A stretch of 64,000 bases of DNA from Eutreptiella sp. 'Long Island Sound 2002' (taxonomy: Eukaryota; Protista; Euglenida). Shown in pieces: positions 6,334 through 29,585 of this stretch. The stretch is from assembly GCA_964036045.1 (NCBI GenBank), contig OZ038379.1, forward strand, positions 6,448,001-6,512,000, in the 5' to 3' direction. The translations under genes and the position numbers were made by a program. The notes beneath the pieces were generated by a model. It was not told the DNA's origin. It saw only the letters and a program-made list of their open reading frames with translations, and did no database searches. The number at the start of each line of letters is the position of its first letter. Positions within the stretch are counted from its first letter, which is position 1.

Positions 6334-6383
6334 CTATGCACAGGGGCACAAACTCTCCTGCTTGCTGGACACCGAGGCTGGAA

Positions 6384-7340
6384 ACACCATGACACAATAG
6401 CAACACCATCTCACAACAACACCACAATCACACAACAACAACACCACCACACAACAACAACACCATCACACAACAACAACACCATCACACAACAACAACA
6501 ACATCATACAACAACAACACCATCACACAACAACAACAACATCACACAACAACAACACCATCTCACAACAACACCACCATCTCAGAACAACAACAACACC
6601 ATCACACAACAACAACAACCCCATCACAAAACACCATCACACAACAACAACACCATCACACAACAACAACACCATCTCACAACAACAACACCATCACACA
6701 ACAACAACACCATCACACAACGACAACACCATCACACAACAACAACACCATCACACAACAACAACACCATCTCACAACAACACCACCATCTCAGAACAAC
6801 AACAACACAATCACACAACAACAACCCCATCACAAAACACCATCACACAACAACAACACCACTACACAACAACAACACCATCACACAACAACACCACCAC
6901 CACACAACAACAACACCATCACACAACAACAACACCATCTCACAACAACACCACCATCTCAGAACAACAACACCATCACACAACAACAACACCATCACAC
7001 AACAACAACACCACACAACAACAACACCATCACACAACAACAACACCATCACACAACAACAACACCATCACACAACAACAACACCATCACACAACAACAA
7101 CACCATCACACAACAACACCACAATCTCACAACAACACCACCATCTCAGAACAACAACAACACCATCACACAACAACAACCCCGTCACAAAACACCATCA
7201 CACAACAACAACACACCACTACACAACAACAACACCATCACACAACAACACCACCACCACACAACAAGAACACCATCACACAACAACGACACTCTGACCC
7301 AACAACAACACCATAACACCAATAAAACACCACAACAAAG
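6384..7340. repeat. ~950-bp imperfect CAA/CAC/CAT microsatellite-minisatellite filling cyclase intron 5
   Basis: Reiterated ACAACAACAACACCATCAC-like units, almost devoid of G on the + strand. Confidence 0.97.
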
Positions 7341-7757: not shown

Positions 7758-8063
7758 CTGCCCACCGACCGCAAGGCCGGAAACCCGCGCAGCAAGATTC
7801 ACCATGGGCCCGTAGTAATCCTTGCGCTTTGTCGTGGGGTCCACCTCAAGTTCACACATGCCCGTGTGCATGCCCATCCGCACCCGCGGCCCATTCCACA
7901 TCACGCGCCCATCCGGCAGCGCCTCCCGCCGCGCGTCGGACATGCCCAGGATCTCTGGCGGCCACTCGACCTCCAGCAGTGCCTTCTGCGCGTCGATGCA
8001 CCACATGACGGCGTTCTCTGGCTCCGTAAACGCGACCATGAAGGCGTCCCCCTCCGTCTTGAC
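7758..8063 (-). CDS. 7TM-adenylate cyclase fusion, exon 4 (catalytic core)
   Basis: CAG|GTC acceptor, CAG|GTGTGC donor, 102 codons. VKTEGDAFMVAF, GPRVRMGMHTG and DYYGPMVNLAARVSG show the Lys/Asp ATP-specifying residues and the catalytic Asn/Arg of class III adenylate cyclases. Confidence 0.95.
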
Positions 8064-19789: not shown

Positions 19790-21178
19790 TCACTGCTTGG
19801 CAGCTGTGTAAAGCAGGGTTGCTTGGCCACCTCTGGAATTCGGCAGCTCCGTACTCGTGATGAGAGGCCCTGTCAAGGCTTGGTCTATCATTGCCCAGAC
19901 GTTTGATGATACTTTACCATCCAACGGTTCAGAAGGGTCGACCACCAAAGACTTGATCTTCTCCACACTCATCCATTCGGCCGCCAGTAACTCATGTGTG
20001 TCCATGACAATCTGCTCTTTGGTGGCCCGGAGCTTCACCATGACATAGATGTCGCCTTGTCCGAAACGCCTTCCATGCGAGTGCCTCTGACTCACTATCC
20101 CCTCCAAAACACCCGTTACCCCCGTCTCTTCCAGCACCTCACGCCCGGCCGTCTCGGCAAAGTCCTCCCCAGGATCCGCCAGGCCGCCCGGAAGCTTCCA
20201 GCATCCCTGGAAAATGGGCAGAGGCGACACTCTCTCCTTCACCATCAACACTTCGTCTTTGCTGTTGACAATGACCGCCCCCACGCCAATCTGTGTGAAC
20301 GCGTACTTGGGCAACGTGCTCGGCGTGGCCGGCAACCATCTGGTCATCAGGACATAGTCAGGCTTGGAATGATGGAACTCGAACCCGTACCGGGCCGCCA
20401 CGCCGACACAGGATGCACTGCTCAGAGGTATTTTCAACCAGATGCCCTGTTTGCCCGCCTCCTGCCACGATGCCAGGCCCTGCCTGAGCTCAGCATCAAA
20501 GGCTGCTACAGCAGCCCCAGATGTGCCATCTGGTACGGCCAGCTCAACCCCTCCATAGCGGTCTTCAAAGGGCGAGAGGAGAGGTTGGGGCGGAGGGGGG
20601 GTCGCACCGGCAGCCTCGGCGACACACTCGGCCAGCAGGTCGAGGGCAAGCTTGGCGAAAGCCCACATGTTCTGCTCGCGGTTGCTGTGCGTGGACTCTG
20701 CAAACACCCCCTTCTCGACAGGACCAGAGACGAAGATCGACACAAAGCCAGTGGATACATCGGGGAAGTTGAACGTGGGCCCACAGGCGCCACTCTCACA
20801 AACACACCACGTGGCCCCGACTTCCTGTCGTTTCGCTCGCGCCAAATGCTTGGTCCATGTGTTCTTTGACGCCTTGTATGCGGCGCCATCTGTGGGCTTG
20901 TCTTGAGAGAGGTCCAGAGATCCAAGAACCGCACTTGCCCGTTTGGGCCCGTAGGCTACTGCTCCGCAAGTTGCGTAGCAGGAAGCTCCTGGAATAGCCT
21001 GGAGTGCAGCCTGAATCAAACCAGCCGTTGTAGCTTCAAACACCGTAACTGTGTGTGCCAATGCCTTCAGCTTTGCTGCGACGTCCTCCGCCATAGGCGC
21101 CAATGGTCCTGGCTGCACAACGGGAAGGTCCACTTTGTGAAACAACGCATCCAATGCTTCGGATCCTTGATCCCCCAT
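19790..21178 (-). CDS. Intronless CinA/PncC-like domain + NUDT6-type (pre-Nudix + Nudix) hydrolase fusion, 462 aa
   Basis: Single ORF; ATG at 21178 follows a TTTTTGGCAG acceptor 35 nt upstream. N-terminal half shows CinA-C motifs (FEATTAGLI, GASCY...GAVAY, ESGACGP). C-terminal half has DRYGGV...GIWLKIP...GFEFHH...WLP...LP.YA.TQIGVG and an intact Nudix box GLADPGEDFAETAGREVLEETGV. Confidence 0.92.
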   Translation of the reverse strand: MGDQGSEALDALFHKVDLPVVQPGPLAPMAEDVAAKLKALAHTVTVFEATTAGLIQAALQAIPGASCYATCGAVAYGPKRASAVLGSLDLSQDKPTDGAAYKASKNTWTKHLARAKRQEVGATWCVCESGACGPTFNFPDVSTGFVSIFVSGPVEKGVFAESTHSNREQNMWAFAKLALDLLAECVAEAAGATPPPPQPLLSPFEDRYGGVELAVPDGTSGAAVAAFDAELRQGLASWQEAGKQGIWLKIPLSSASCVGVAARYGFEFHHSKPDYVLMTRWLPATPSTLPKYAFTQIGVGAVIVNSKDEVLMVKERVSPLPIFQGCWKLPGGLADPGEDFAETAGREVLEETGVTGVLEGIVSQRHSHGRRFGQGDIYVMVKLRATKEQIVMDTHELLAAEWMSVEKIKSLVVDPSEPLDGKVSSNVWAMIDQALTGPLITSTELPNSRGGQATLLYTAAKQ

Positions 21179-22199
21179 CTCCCTCTCAGAAGATTGGTGA
21201 ATAGCAAAAGCTTCTGCCAAAAAGTGTGGAAGTTGAGCAGAAGATGCCTGAAGCGGTGCAGTCACCCCGGCCCTCTGTTTGAAGCGACGTCAATGGAAGA
21301 GGAAACTTTCCGGAATCGAAACAAACCCAAGGTGTCCAGCACAGACTGTGTACCAGACATGTGGCTGACACACAAAACAGGCAAACTTGATGCAATTGAT
21401 TGATTGGTGCAAGAAAAGGGTTGCCAGTCAGAAACGAAGGGGAACATAGAGCTCTACAGAAACATGTGGGTCCGCGCATCCCTTTTTGTGACTTGCACTT
21501 CGTAATTTTATTAGAACCCAACTGCTGCGATGTGTGTGCTCCGCCCGTGACAGCTTGGTTGTACCACAAACCATGCCCACAGGTGTGCATGCTCTGGTTG
21601 GTGTTTCGACATGTCTGCCCCATGACAGTAGAAAACAGACACCTTGGTCTCAGCCGCAAGGGGTGTGCGTGCAACGTGCACAGTGTACATATTACAGGGT
21701 GATATTGGGGATTTTAGCTACAATTGGCAATACTCTTGCCTATCTAGACCATAGTACACCATATTTGTCCCATATTATAACATCTGGTGCACCTAGGCAT
21801 GAGTGGACCAATCCAAACAATGTTCCCCACGTGATCAACTGCAACATACAACGGTTCATTTCCAAATATGGCCGGCATACTTCCATACATCTGACAGTGC
21901 ACCTATCGAGCTAATGTCACCGTGCGTGTGGCCACTGACTTGAACTCACAAATTGAATCCCACCCGTAATGGGGCACACGGGGACGAGACCAGATCAGAC
22001 TTGCCACCTGCGTCCGGCAGATCAGAATAGACCTGAATCCCACTAAATTGTGCACTGGACAGCAGGAGCTGGTTCCTACGGACTTGTATGTGTGTGTGGC
22101 AGGAGCGGGTATTACTGAGTGGCACACTTTTCGGGGCTGTTTCCAACTCGGTTGCTCTGCTGGACGCTAGTGGCACATCTGCCCAGACAGAACCTGACC

Positions 22200-24349: not shown

Positions 24350-24760
24350 ATCCAATTGCGAAAAATTGCGGGAAAATTGCGGGAAAATTGCGGGGAAATT
24401 GCGGGGAAATTGCGGTGTTGTAACCAAACCATAGTGACCCTATCGAAGCCTCAAGGAACAAGAATTCTGCACGAGAGCCTCAGAATATTGAAACAGATCG
24501 AATCGTCCACAGGTATCAGTGTTACGACGACAAGCGGCCCTCAATCTGATCATGAAATTGAAGCACAATTCACTGTTTTTGGGGGCAAGAAAACATTGAA
24601 GGATATTGTTCTGCAACAGTTGTTCGCAAAGGCGAAGCGCACCAATAAGCACGCAAAGCGATTGCGAAAAAATTGCTGAAAAAAGCGGAAAATTGCGCAA
24701 AAATGTGGAAAATTGCGAAAAATAGCGAAATTGCAAGAAATTGCGAAAAATTGCGGACCT
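24350..24760. repeat. Two tracts of (GAAAATTGCG)n-like repeats (24352-24415, 24660-24756)
   Basis: Read directly. The second tract ends in a C-tract just 3' of the RAP gene. Confidence 0.85.
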
Positions 24761-24881: not shown

Positions 24882-25331
24882 TCATGGTGTATCCCCAAGG
24901 CCCAGCCGCTGCAGGTACCTCCGCCGTTCTGCCTCAGCCATTCCGTCCCACTCCCAGAACGGCACAGACACAACGCGGTACCCAAAGCACTGCAGCTGCC
25001 GTCGCTTCAACAACGTCGCCCCCGAAGCCGCAAAGCCCCCGGGGCCCTGCACAAAATGTGATGGGCCGTCCACCTCCACAACAACGCGGCGCTTCTGCAG
25101 CAGAATGTCCGCACTGTACCCCCCAGCGTCAGACAACACGACCTCTTCAACAAACTTCACGTTCATCTGCCGGAGCACCGCGGCCACAGACCTCTGCAGC
25201 CGCGAAGGAGCCGCACGTTGTGAGGCCTCTGTAAAATGCCTGGCACACTTCTCTACGAACGAGCTCTTGCACCGAAGCACTTTGCTGCTGAGCGGAAGGT
25301 GCTGCTGTTGCAATTGCACGTGCAGAAAGAC
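24882..25331 (-). CDS. OPR/RAP protein, exon 2 (RAP domain, stop)
   Basis: TTCAG|GTC acceptor, phase 0; 149 codons then TGA. YSADILL...VVVEVDGPSHF...GATLLKRRQLQCFGYRVVSVPFWEW is the canonical RAP domain signature. Confidence 0.95.
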   Translation of the reverse strand, partial: VFLHVQLQQQHLPLSSKVLRCKSSFVEKCARHFTEASQRAAPSRLQRSVAAVLRQMNVKFVEEVVLSDAGGYSADILLQKRRVVVEVDGPSHFVQGPGGFAASGATLLKRRQLQCFGYRVVSVPFWEWDGMAEAERRRYLQRLGLGDTP

Positions 25332-26047
25332 CTGAACAGAAATGTGAGTGAGTGAGGCCAAATGTTTGGGTGCACAGATGACTTCTTGTGACAAACAGAA
25401 CTGTACGACCCACAGCGATTGGCAGTCAATCCGTTGATAGGGACGGCTGCAGTGGGGGGGTCGAGGTCACAGAACCCTCCGGGGCATTGGAGGGGGGACC
25501 GGTTTGGGACTGGGACAACGAGAGAGCGCCAACTGCGATCGCCAAGTTAAACCCACCACTTTCCTTCCATTTTCCCGTGAACGCTGCTGATCTGACATCC
25601 TCAGCCACGAACGAGACAGACCAGAAGTATGTGCACCACTTTCTGACACAAGACGCTCTGTTCATAAATTCATGCAAAAACAACCCTCAAATCTGCAGGT
25701 GCAGATGGTTTTCATTGCCAAGTGTTGCCCAATGAAACGTCGCACACAACTACCCCTGACCTCCGGCTGAAACCGCACCCCGAAATCACGACTTTTAATG
25801 GCACTCTTTGCACGTCACAGGCCTTAGCTTCACCCTACGAGTGAACAGCACGTCGAACCTCAAAAGCACCCCTAACGACGACTTCTCCGTGGCGCCCAAA
25901 GACGACAATCTGCCTTGTGCTGGGGTCCTTGCCGTTAAGTACTCACTCACCGCACCACATTTGCAGCAAGCTCCCCCACAGTGATTTGTTGCTCAAAGAG
26001 TAGAAGAGAAGTAGAACAGGATCGCATACAAAGCCATCAAAACGTAC

Positions 26048-28666
26048 CTGATGCAGTTGAGACAGTTCAAACGAATACATGGTCTTCTCAGTGATGTCAG
26101 CAAATGCCCGGTCAAGAAGGCCGGTAATGGTGGTGTCATGCGAGCTGTCAAGTACAGCAAAACTCCACACAGTGTTGGTAACGTTCTGTGCATGGAATGT
26201 GGTCAAGAAGTCTTCATGTAACATCCGGTGTGCCATGGCAGCCATTAGGTCATCATTACGCACACCTAATGTTGCAAAACCCCACACAGTGTTGGCAATC
26301 CCCTGTGCATTGAATGTGGTCAAGAAGTCTTCATGCAACATCCGATTTGCCATACCTACCATCAGGTCCCCATTATGTACACCCAGTGTGGCGAAGCCCC
26401 ACACAGTGTTGGCAATCTCCTGTGCATTGAATGTGGTCAAGAAGTCTTCCTGCAACATCCGATGTGCCATAGCTACCATCAGGTCCCCATTATGTACACC
26501 CAGTGTGGCGAAGCCCCACACAGTGTTGGCAACGTCCTGTGCATTGAATGTGGTCAAGAAGTCTTCATGCAACATCCGCCGTGCCATAGCCGCCATCAGG
26601 TCCTCATCATGTACACCCAGTGTGGCGAAGCCCCACACAGTGTTGGCAACGTTCTGTGCCTTGAATGTGGTCAAGAAGTCTTCATGCAACATCCGGTGTG
26701 CCATAGCAGCCATCAGGTCCCCATTATGCACACCCAGTGTGGCGAAGCCCCACACAGTGTTGGCAACGTTCTGTGCATTGAATGTGGTCAAGAAGTCTTC
26801 ATGCAACATCCGGTGTGCCATAGCCGCCATCAGGTCCTCATTATGTACACCCAGTGTGGCGAAGCCCCACACAGTGTTGGCAACGTTCTGTGCATTGAAT
26901 GTGGTCAAGAAGTCTTCATGCAACATCCGGTGTGCCATAGCCGCCATCAGGTCCTCATTATGTACACCCAGTGTGGCGAAGCCCCACACAGTGTTGGCAA
27001 TCTCCTGTGCATTGAATGTGGTCAAGAAGTCTTCATGCAACATCCGGTGTGCCATAGCTACCATCAGGTCCTCATTATGTTCACCCAGTGTGGCGAAGCC
27101 CCACACAGTGTTGGCAACGTTCTGTGCATTGAATGTGGTCAAGAAGTCTTCATGCAACATCCGGTGTGCCATAGCCGCCATCAGGTCCTCATTATGCACA
27201 CCCAGTGTGGCGAAGCCCCACACAGTGTTGGCAACGTCCTGTGCATTGAATGTGGTCAAGAATTCTTCATGTAACATCCGGTGTGCCATAGCCGCCATCA
27301 GGGCCCCATTATGTACACCCAGTGTGGCGAAGCCCCACACAGTGTTGGCAATCCCCTGTGCAATGAATGTGGTCAAGAAGTCTTCATGCAACATCCGGTG
27401 TGCCATGGCAGCCATCAGGTCCCCATCATGTACACCCAGTGTGGCGAAGCCCCACACAGTGTTGGCAATCTCCTGTGCATTGAATGTGGTCAAGAAGTCT
27501 TCATGCAACATCCGATGTGCCATAGCCGCCATCAGGTCCCCATTATGCACACCCAGTGTGGCGAAGCCCCACACAGTGTTGGCAACGTCCTGTGCATTGA
27601 ATGTGGTCAAGAAGTCTTCATGCAACATCCGGCGTGCGATAGCCGCCATCAGGTCCCCATTATGTACACCCAGTGTGGCGAAGCCCCACACAGTGTTGGC
27701 AACGTTCTGTGCCTTGAATGTGGTCAAAAAATCTTCATGCAACATCCGGCGTGCCATGGCAGCCATCAGGTCCCCATTACGTACACCCAATGTGGCGAAT
27801 GCCCACACAATGTTGGCCACACTTTGGGCTGAGAGCTGTTCAATCATACGGTCATCCGTCACACACGTTGCAAGCGCCTCCATCAGCTCCGGGTGGGGCA
27901 TGCCTACCTTGGCCAAGGCCCAGCAGGTCATGGAGATCTCTTGGCCACTGAGGTTGGGCACAAGGTCACGCCGAAGCATCTGTTGTCCGATTCCATGCAC
28001 CAGGGCCTTGTCGCGAAGTCGCATCTTACTGAATGCATGCAGTAGCTGCACTGCCTGACGCCCGTTAAGAGCCCGCAGCACTTCCGCGTCGAGGATGCGA
28101 CGCCGCAAGGCACGCACTGTTTCATTTCTGGGCTTCGTAATGAGCCTCCGGACTTCACTGCTACGCGCACAAAGAGATGCCACTTGCCGAGTTATCGCCA
28201 CCAGGTTAGTGGGCGTGTATCTGGCAGCCCCCCTCTCCACCTCCGCACACACCAGCGCAAACTCTTCGTCCGCATCACCGGACTGCACCTTCCGTCGCAG
28301 CGGTCTCGGGAATCGTTCTGCCTTTGTTGGTGTGTGGCCACGGCCCTTATCCCGCCGCTGTCCTCCAGGTCCCTTTCGGCTGCTGAACATGCGGCGCACC
28401 ACGATCGAGCCCCGGGACCCCAGGCCACGGAACATGGCACGAGACATGGAAGTGGTACCTGCAGCGCCTGCAGTGCGCGCTACAGCGGCACCGGTGCACG
28501 AGCGGCCAGACACGCCTCCCCTCAGGCATTTGTAGTCCAGTCGGTGCCCGGCGAGGGACACCGTCCCCTTGGCAGCGTGACTGAGGGATGTGATGCCCCT
28601 TGTGCTGAGCGCGGCCCATGAGGACGTTGCCTGTGCCCTCTGCAACCAACGCAGTATCGCATGCAT
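26048..28666 (-). CDS. OPR/helical-repeat RAP-domain protein, exon 1 (presequence plus 39-aa repeat array)
   Basis: ATG at 28666, 3 nt after a TCTCAACAG acceptor; 873 codons. Arg/Ser/Ala-rich N-terminus ending RRMFSS. Repeats of the F.AQ.VAN..W.FA.LG type seen in OPR/RAP-associated proteins. Donor CAG|GTACGT. Confidence 0.92.
26192..27829 (-). repeat. Coding tandem array: 14 x 117-bp (39-aa) near-identical repeats
   Basis: The 117-bp period was read directly (e.g. TGAATGTGG at 26311 and 26428). Consensus AQxxANTVWGFATLGVHNxDLMAAMAHRMLHEDFLTTFN. Confidence 0.98.
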
Positions 28667-29585
28667 GCGCTGTTGAGACACGAGGAAGTGCTGCAGCAGC
28701 CACAACACACTCGATATGACTCAATATCATACCCCTCGATGGGTCAAGGGAGCATGACTCCGTGTACACAGTGGTCTGCCTCCTTGTGAGCGGACACTCC
28801 ACACAGGTGTGTACTGAAGAATGGAGGACCTCCTTCGGTTTGTGCCTCCAATCTTGCATTGCAGAACTTGTACGTTAATTTTCGTTGTTGGCTCGAGAGG
28901 GGTACTTGCATTTTACTCTTCCGTTTCCTTTCCTTCGCGGATTTCAACACATTGTGCAGGTGCAATATTAGGCTGGTGGCTGCTGGCAGACTGCATTTTT
29001 GGGATTTGGCCAGGCACTTTGCCTGTTGGTGGATATGGGGGAGAGAGGGGAATAAAAGAGCGGCTAATCAGTCACCAAATGGCACAGTGACACAGGCAGA
29101 CAGTCATTGAATGAAATATTCACAAAATTCAGATGTGCTTCCATTGTTTGTCTTGACGCCATTCAGCCATTTATTGACGCCCGAGCGGCAGGCCGGTTAC
29201 ATTGTCTTGGAACATGTTTCACAGTCAGGCTCACTGCCTCCCAATCCCCTTCAATCCTGGGGAGGGAGGCGGGGATGCCACAAAGGTGGGTCCTGCTTTT
29301 TTTGTTGATGCAGGTCACAGCTCCATGTAACTGACATCCCAAGCCGTCATACGTTGTACACACTCCACACAACTCCCCCAGCCAGCAAGAGATGCTGTAC
29401 TCAATGCAATATTGCACACCATCCGGCATATCACGGATCCCTTGCCCATGAAGGCGCTTGGGTCCCCCCCTCATCTTTCCCTAACTACCCACCCATGCCG
29501 ATGGGATGGAACAGCCGTTGGTTGGTTGGTATGAGTGAAGTGTAGCCGGTTCTGGCTTTCATCTGTCCAGGTGGGCTGGATTTGC

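Follow-up and report, generated by a model that had tools for sequence, protein, structure and literature searches.

A natural array of near-identical HPR/OPR-type repeats that differ mainly at one residue, in a candidate RNA-reading RAP protein

Can a natural helical-repeat protein read RNA one nucleotide at a time, through a single residue in each of its repeats? The question is raised by a gene in a 64,000-nucleotide stretch of DNA assigned to Eutreptiella sp. 'Long Island Sound 2002' (assembly GCA_964036045.1, contig OZ038379.1, positions 6,448,001 to 6,512,000 of the forward strand), which is analysed here at its full length and referred to as the window. The gene lies on the minus strand, with exons at 28666..26048 and 25331..24882, and encodes from its first ATG (28666) a protein of 1,022 amino acids, which contains about 17 helical repeats, 14 of them 39 amino acids long and mutually 87% identical (mean pairwise), followed by a RAP domain. 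An earlier interpretation made from the letters of the DNA (the sequence-only reading) had seen in this array a four-state code and in the protein a re-programmable organellar RNA endonuclease. The results of the current analysis lead us to lean, by a modest balance of probability, towards an organelle-targeted HPR/OPR-RAP protein that reads one nucleotide per repeat via repeat position 28 and then cuts the RNA or holds an RNA end.

The array is encoded within an open reading frame (ORF) of 921 codons on the minus strand (25943..28708). Tandem Repeats Finder describes it as a 117-bp unit at 26165-27817, in 14.1 copies with 93% matches, 0% indels and a score of 2753; the array length of 14 units rests on one assembly. 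In the 39-residue register, the pair that follows an invariant Ala-Gln runs SV, NV, DV, EI, GI, DV, NV, EI, NV, NV, NV, DV, EI, GI, NV, encoded in the core repeats by AAC, GAC, GAG or GGG and then GTT or ATT. The translation of the ORF thus matches exactly the order of pairs listed in the sequence-only reading, and the four codon states that it named (AAC GTT, GAC GTT, GAG ATT, GGG ATT) are seen in the codons of the array. The residue after the invariant Gln, at position 28, is N, D, E or G only in the 14 core repeats, and the full string of key residues including the degenerate repeats is A-E-S-N-D-E-G-D-N-E-N-N-N-D-E-G-N. Position 28 has the highest entropy in the repeat (2.1 bits), and codons 28 and 29 account for 18 of the 82 departures from the consensus, against an expectation of 4.2 for 6 of the 117 sites. 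The flanking codons had been described as almost invariant, which is accurate for positions 26-27 and 30-34 but not for the repeat overall, as 36 of the 117 nucleotide sites and 23 of the 39 codons vary in at least one repeat. Moderate polymorphism is found at positions 5 (G/E/D), 13 (H/R/N), 25 (N/K/I/H) and 9 (A/V). The repeats are nevertheless far more uniform than usual, as had been proposed, since inter-repeat identity has a median of 33% in homologue arrays and reaches at most 79% in the database arrays examined.

Nonsynonymous (pN) and synonymous (pS) diversity among the 14 repeats, calculated by the Nei-Gojobori method, separate position 28 from the remainder of the repeat. For all codons except 28 and 29, pS is 0.155 and pN 0.047, and therefore this part of the repeat is under purifying selection. 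At codon 28, pN is 0.47, three times the synonymous diversity of the array (0.15). Repeats that share a key residue are no more alike outside codons 28-29 than repeats in which it differs (7.6 vs 8.0 differences; permutation p = 0.42). The background of the repeat thus shows no coupling to the key residue, as homogenisation together with selection for retained differences would produce. A higher-order repeat was considered as the origin of the string N-D-E-G, which appears twice (R1-4 and R10-13); the paired repeats are no closer than average outside codons 28-29, and a recent block duplication is therefore unsupported.

The same position stands out in arrays of other origin. In a set of 47 arrays whose repeats are at least 50% identical to one another, the key position is the site of highest entropy in 12 and one of the top three in 20, against about 1 and about 4 by chance. 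When 31 arrays with at least 55% identity are considered, it has the highest mean entropy z-score (1.75), with a helix A position second, and is among the top three entropy sites in 16. At the DNA level, seven arrays of different assemblies were compared, and in six of them pN of the key codon exceeds the array-wide pS, by a factor of 1.6 to 7.3. The residue after Gln therefore behaves as a specificity position under selection, as had been suggested, and position 28 shows the signature of a selected specificity determinant that recurs in independent arrays. One of these independent cases is P0004 (L001:3001-7839, contig ctg9562_17x_l of ENA assembly ERZ25074135), an ORF of 1,612 amino acids with 18 near-identical 38-residue repeats, in which the key residues are D, G, E and N; the ORF lacks a RAP domain, and its C-terminal half is unrelated and unannotated. 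Its codons for the same states are partly different (GGC and GAA vs GGG and GAG), which argues for an independent origin of those key states, and the contig, at 17x vs 39x coverage, probably belongs to another organism of the sample. Uniform arrays of this kind form a recurrent class in environmental protists (P0004, P0014, P0319 and others).

The composition of the key position is limited, if less strictly than four states would require. Of the residues that follow Gln in 880 motifs (120 homologues), 72% are E, D, N or G, and inclusion of A, H and S raises this to 93%; 1,859 motifs from 247 proteins gave E478, G300, N292, D290, A192, H105 and S80 and hardly any K or R. The proposal of a recurring limited alphabet thus stands insofar as N, D, E and G recur in paralogues and in distant relatives, but A, H and S account for about 20% family-wide. 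The second residue of the pair, which the sequence-only reading had made part of the code, did not keep that role. Across the 880 motifs it is L, I or V, with no clear coupling to the key residue. A close paralogue (L003:4766-10276, contig ctg10473_39x_l of ENA assembly ERZ25074135, with the same 39x coverage as the contig of the window) has only NI, GI and DI pairs. We reject co-variation of the two residues as a code element on account of the Ile-only paralogue and the family-wide lack of clear coupling, and because this close relative uses only Ile, the V/I partner in the window gene is probably a hitch-hiker, a linked historical change. The N-terminus and the RAP exon of the paralogue are very similar by eye to those of the window gene, and its RAP exon is intact; its key string reads S NNN S NGNNN S GNDN M GND, with Ile after every key residue, and block duplications re-insert the SV repeat three times.

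The protein is a member of the HPR/OPR-RAP family (FASTK/RESC6-like). Exon 1 matches the Pfam families DUF1601 (E = 5.7e-21) and FAST_1 (E = 6.3e-17), and exon 2 matches RAP with 46.6 bits against a gathering cut-off of 24.2 (E = 3.3e-12). Among proteins of solved structure, those nearest in sequence are Trypanosoma brucei RESC6 (E = 3e-22) and mL115 (E = 2e-14), an OPR protein of the Chlamydomonas mitoribosome, and 6,348 representative relatives were found, with PF26188 (RESC6) as the precomputed Pfam family. The features by which the HPR/OPR family is recognised are present, i.e. tandem repeats of 37-40 amino acids as antiparallel helix pairs, an alpha-solenoid and similarity to the family profile. 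The PPPEW motif and 38-residue period of the Chlamydomonas-type OPR were not found, the repeat here starting GVHNGDLM and spanning 39 amino acids, and therefore the repeats are closer to the HPR type, which has been treated as part of the OPR family (PMC13126933). A 2025 review lists a repeat length of 39 amino acids as 'apparently missing' (PMC12691811). Pfam matched FAST_1 and RAP but not FAST_2, the exons having been scanned apart; the module known from metazoan FASTK proteins spans the intron here.

The RAP domain itself is intact in residues and fold. The motif D...E-x-D-G-x-x-H, which the sequence-only reading had pointed out, is present as D...E-V-D-G-P-S-H. In an alignment of 44 RAP sequences, E86, D88, G89 and H92 are invariant and D75 and E63 occur in at least 90%, all of them being present in the window gene. 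An AlphaFold2 model of exon 2 (m8903857659f2; predicted local distance difference test score, pLDDT, 87) was matched by Foldseek to mitoribosomal RAP proteins of Toxoplasma gondii (TMq ~0.6), to I-Bth0305I and Vsr, and to the FAST1-FAST2-RAP module of FASTKD4; its closest structural matches outside RAP proteins are the DNA endonucleases I-Bth0305I, Vsr, PvuRts1I and AbaSI. Pfam, sequence matches to solved structures, AlphaFold2 and Foldseek agree with the earlier description of an OPR/HPR-type alpha-solenoid fused to a RAP domain, which has a Vsr-like PD-(D/E)xK fold. FASTKD5 is the only RAP protein reported to have endoribonuclease activity in vitro, and FASTKD4 probably lacks this activity (PMC12687428). 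Judged by its conserved residues, the RAP domain of the window gene is a candidate endoribonuclease.

Where position 28 lies in the fold bears on what it might contact. The AlphaFold2 model of residues 121-887 (m0498206b0076, from a 60-sequence alignment) shows regular helix pairs with a pLDDT of 92 and a predicted template modelling (TM) score, pTM, of 0.84. In this model, helix A spans repeat positions 5-15, a one-turn helix spans 21-23 and helix B spans 26-39. Position 28 is the third residue of helix B and position 25 immediately precedes that helix, with position 13 lying at the C-terminal end of helix A, on the hairpin edge shared with positions 25 and 28. Hydrophobic residues occupy positions 29, 30, 33, 34 and 37 of helix B, and its exposed face carries Q27, X28, N31, G35 and T38. 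Q27 and N31 are nearly invariant across the family, which places an invariant Asn one turn beyond position 28, and these conserved exposed polar residues in the model point to helix B as a binding surface. B helices line the concave face in HEAT repeats. Residue 28 may therefore be groove-facing, on this helical-face argument. The best Foldseek matches of the array model are RESC6, mL115, HPR/OPR proteins of the T. gondii and Polytomella mitoribosomes and Polytomella ASA2, with a target-normalised TM of 0.66-0.73 to RESC6 (8fn4/8fni) and mL115 (7pkt_O); PPR10 and designer PPRs match more weakly. RESC6 has been described as a HEAT-type solenoid with RNA on its concave face (PMC12687428).

The anatomy of the gene agrees with a protein destined for an organelle. 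The whole coding span from the first ATG to the stop covers 24882..28666 on the minus strand (as do all features of the gene given here) in two exons, as established from the ORFs, a splice model and the position of the intron, which is kept in paralogues. A basic N-terminal extension of 94 amino acids from the first ATG (28385..28666) ends RRMF/SS, where the slash marks a predicted cleavage site, and is a putative organelle presequence; alternative ATGs within it lie at 28447, 28435 and 28390. The Arg-rich N-terminus with RRMFSS that the sequence-only reading had noted is thus present. The first 113 amino acids contain 20 K+R, 2 D+E and 23 S+T, are rich in S, T, A and G, and show no hydrophobic core of a signal peptide (maximum KD12 0.75). 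The sequence RRMF/SS presumably corresponds to the R-3 cleavage motif of the mitochondrial processing peptidase. Protein import into a complex plastid, as in a dinoflagellate or haptophyte relative, needs a signal peptide, and since none is seen, the mitochondrion would be favoured if the plastid is complex. On these sequence features, mitochondrial targeting of the protein is suggested, and a mitochondrial location is plausible.

The extension is followed by a basic linker and conserved region 1 (27905..28384; helices H15-H163 of the AlphaFold2 model), which includes two degenerate N-terminal repeats with key residues A and E. Repeat 0, a degenerate 39-residue repeat with the key pair SV, lies at 27788..27904, and the thirteen near-identical repeats R1-R13, with key residues N D E G D N E N N N D E G, at 26267..27787, where the key codon of repeat k runs from 27706-117(k-1) down to 27704-117(k-1). 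Repeat 14 (26150..26266) is slightly degenerate and carries the pair NV. Exon 1 ends with the first part of a FAST_1-like linker, conserved region 2 (26048..26149), which closes with ...SQLHQ and is covered by the Pfam FAST_1 match (61.7 bits, ORF residues 827-869). An intron of 716 nucleotides (25332..26047; GT...AG, phase 0), with donor GTACGT (26048/26047) and acceptor TTCAG, joins the array exon to the RAP exon and is an addition to the gene as previously described. Exon 2 opens at 25331 with VFLHV... and stops at 24882; its first part (25080..25331) is a helical linker in the position of FAST_2, as delimited by model helices 2-55 and the 44-sequence alignment, and the RAP domain with its conserved D, E-V-D-G and H occupies 24906..25079. 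Two paralogues on other contigs of ENA assembly ERZ25074135 have the intron at the same position (QLHQ followed by GTAT, exon 2 starting V[FL]LHV). The sequence is present in estuary metagenome and metatranscriptome runs, of which those of 'organism A' diverge from the window by about 1-2% in the flanks, and contigs of one metatranscriptome (run X8) match both exons at 99-100% and leave the intron span uncovered. These matches are weak evidence of expression and splicing.

We propose a series of interlinked steps for the action of this protein. A nuclear gene would give rise to an organelle-targeted, probably mitochondrial, HPR/OPR-RAP protein, whose approximately 17 helix-hairpin repeats would stack into an alpha-solenoid. 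Position 28, on the conserved exposed face of helix B, would be the main specificity residue, and with one nucleotide of a single-stranded organellar RNA read by each repeat, the target would be 15 to 17 nucleotides long. The C-terminal FAST-like linker and RAP domain may then cut the RNA, or may hold and define an RNA end beside the bound site. The array would be kept uniform by unequal crossing-over or gene conversion within a fast-evolving family of paralogues, and selection would keep the repeats different at position 28. The anatomy of the gene, its fold and family, the intact acidic residues of the RAP domain and the nonsynonymous excess at position 28, here and in independent arrays, are direct results; RNA as the ligand, the reading of one base per repeat, any assignment of residues to bases, cleavage and the mitochondrial address are inferred. 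A strict four-letter code and nuclease activity are plausible; taken together in their strongest form, in which N, D, E and G at position 28 would each suffice to specify one of the four RNA bases and the RAP domain would act as an endonuclease, they make a proposal that we regard as unlikely.

Several observations weigh against one-base-per-repeat reading followed by cutting, and some of them would also suit other explanations. The core array of 14 repeats (window 26150-27787) has a net charge of -35, or -2.5 per repeat, with 36 His, and is the most acidic of 195 family arrays (mean -0.40 per repeat, standard deviation 0.75); its helix B is without Lys or Arg, where the RNA grooves of Chlamydomonas OPR proteins have been described as rich in both (PMC8660880). 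This acidity speaks against simple binding of RNA. Elsewhere the protein is basic, with +18 in the N-terminal region, +13 in conserved region 1 and +4 in the linker plus RAP. The first turn of a helix generally favours acidic and small residues. RAP proteins are in many cases structural components of ribosomes and not nucleases (PMC12687428). The close paralogue has a key string that is almost monotonous, mostly N, and carries a 2-bp deletion that breaks its frame (repeat spacing 115 vs 117 near 7940-8055); it is either a pseudogene or affected by a sequencing error, and fits a birth-and-death family in which some copies are non-functional. A young, recently amplified array with no code per repeat would accommodate much of this, the protein serving as a scaffold or general RNA chaperone like RESC6 and the mitoribosomal HPR proteins, with position 28 a tolerant exposed residue at the start of a helix. 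The marked acidity of the array and the nearly all-N string of the paralogue would agree with it, RESC6 has been described mainly as a scaffold (PMC12687428), and AAC-GAC-GAG-GGG is a single-nucleotide chain, so that three or four mutations and repeat shuffling could suffice. Such an array would, however, hardly show a pN at codon 28 three times the synonymous diversity when pN/pS is 0.3 in the rest of the repeat, nor position 28 as the top entropy site in 12 of 47 independent uniform arrays when about one is expected by chance; Gly makes up 16% of key residues although it is not favoured in the first helix turn, and the different codons of P0004 for the same states (GGC, GAA) speak for an independent origin. 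We therefore hold this explanation to be possible but doubtful.

It is very unlikely, in our estimation, that the locus is non-functional or that the length of the array is an assembly artefact. The frameshifted paralogue suggests that such decay occurs in the family; contigs from four public short-read runs break inside the array and do not span it; and the only other copy found (ENA contig L002, 99.995% identical over 21.5 kb) belongs to the same assembly, so that it is no independent copy. Against this, the frame is intact over 14 indel-free repeats and the intron is conserved, selection outside codon 28 is purifying, metatranscriptome contigs match both exons, and the contig name ctg10186_39x_l suggests a long-read assembly. 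A target other than RNA is equally improbable, whether DNA, in the manner of a natural TALEN-like organellar DNA endonuclease, or another protein. The closest fold matches of the RAP model outside its own family are DNA endonucleases, and an acidic array would suit a basic protein partner, but the ligand of an HPR protein, PbHPR1, in vitro was RNA rather than DNA (PMC6212722), mL115 and related proteins hold RNA in single-stranded form (PMC8660880) and FASTKD5 cleaves RNA (PMC12687428).

Comparison with known systems places the organelle-targeted, RNA-reading protein that we favour as a known kind of protein in an unusual form, resembling an engineered consensus-repeat protein. The motif F-N-x-Q-x-[LIV]-A-N-T-x-W-A-x-A-T-L is common to the window gene and to the alveolate HPR-RAP and algal OPR-RAP proteins, a group that includes the RAP proteins of T. 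gondii and Plasmodium and from which the gene differs in its 87% repeat identity, 39-residue period, 17 repeats, absence of PPPEW and extreme acidity; alveolate HPRs have a mean of about six repeats per protein (bioRxiv 10.64898/2026.01.22.701003). The Paulinella OPR-RAP proteins have the same domain order, i.e. a variable N-terminus, conserved region 1, repeats, conserved region 2 and RAP (PMC7729196). RESC6 and mL115, the best solved relatives, are degenerate-repeat subunits of large RNA-protein complexes, with 15-21% identity, and single-stranded rRNA 3' ends lie in the inner grooves of mL115, mL116 and mL117 (PMC8660880). As in the NCL cluster of Chlamydomonas, the paralogues of the window gene are clustered and fast-evolving. 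In two other assemblies (L006, ERZ25039479 contig_64207; L007, ERZ22353386 NODE_484), uniform, intronless RESC6-like RAP genes form tandem pairs with another RESC6-like RAP gene that lies immediately upstream, and therefore clustering of paralogues recurs in other organisms. A search for close paralogues with the non-repetitive N-terminal region gave one weak match only, and an exact-pattern scan of JGI metagenome contigs did not find the repeat DNA; the word-indexed search omitted the window's own ORF and probably under-reports very repetitive proteins.

The likeness to TAL effectors, which consists of near-identical tandem repeats, variation at a defined site and uniformity kept by recombination, is one of analogy only, and no relationship to them appeared among the Pfam matches, the sequence matches to solved structures or the 50 Foldseek matches listed. 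TAL effectors are bacterial, have repeats of 33-35 amino acids with a variable pair (positions 12/13) in the inter-helix loop, and bind double-stranded DNA; the window gene differs in having a single variable residue, in the first turn of helix B, and a ligand that is likely RNA. PPR proteins are alike in being alpha-solenoids that read one base per repeat via the first helix turn and the residue before the helix, and in restorer-of-fertility-like (RFL) PPRs the code positions are under diversifying selection. They belong to another repeat family with another repeat length, and natural PPR arrays are degenerate, only the engineered dPPR and cPPR being this uniform.

The PPR code has been established and the HPR/OPR code has not, and a 2025 review states that there is no RNA-recognition code for repeats of the HPR/OPR/FASTK type (PMC12691811). 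Reviews and preprints of 2025-2026 call the HPR/OPR motifs highly degenerate, with no code known, and our literature search found no description of near-identical natural arrays in the HPR/OPR family. The idea of a simple repeat code is in part anticipated, in that one primary specificity position in OPRs, with three just upstream contributing, is already reported (PMC13126933, citing the Jarrige 2019 thesis); as represented in that citing paper, the 'OPR code' exists only as a thesis-level draft. The pattern found here, with position 28 first and position 25 second, fits the description attributed to Jarrige, as far as the citing text conveys it.

The window holds several further features. 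Just downstream of the stop codon of the gene, at 24354-24415 and 24669-24757, are short satellites of 10-11-bp units (AATTGCGGGAA, AAAATTGCGG); the word depth of their bin is about 4,800 in run X1 and about 23,700 in run X3, against roughly 20-50 in the flanks, and they are therefore a very high-copy, genome-wide repeat. A 19-bp minisatellite (AACACCATCACACAACAAC) at 6383-7332, with about 50 copies and 84% matches, lies inside an ORF of 541 codons for which there is no Pfam match, and accounts for the GC skew of -0.41 and AT skew of +0.48 of the 6-8 kb bin. An ORF on the minus strand at 19790-21265 encodes a CinA-Nudix fusion (Pfam CinA, Nudix_hydro and NUDIX); a protein encoded on the ENA contig matches it with 100% identity, its best named matches are in Symbiodiniaceae (55-57%), and its atlas cluster is labelled Haptophyta. 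For ORFs near the end of the window, an exact-protein look-up gave no match on record.

A code for HPR/OPR repeats is still missing, in part because natural arrays are short and degenerate, and an array of 14 repeats that differ essentially at one selected residue is a clean natural scaffold on which such a code can be sought. If the code is simple, the scaffold would be usable for designed RNA-binding or RNA-cutting proteins, and targets would become predictable for thousands of uncharacterised HPR/OPR/FASTK proteins, including those of apicomplexan parasites and of human mitochondria. If a one-residue code, legible directly in the near-identical repeats, and an active RAP domain should both prove true, this protein and its paralogues would be natural, modular and re-programmable RNA endonucleases, the RNA counterpart of TALENs.

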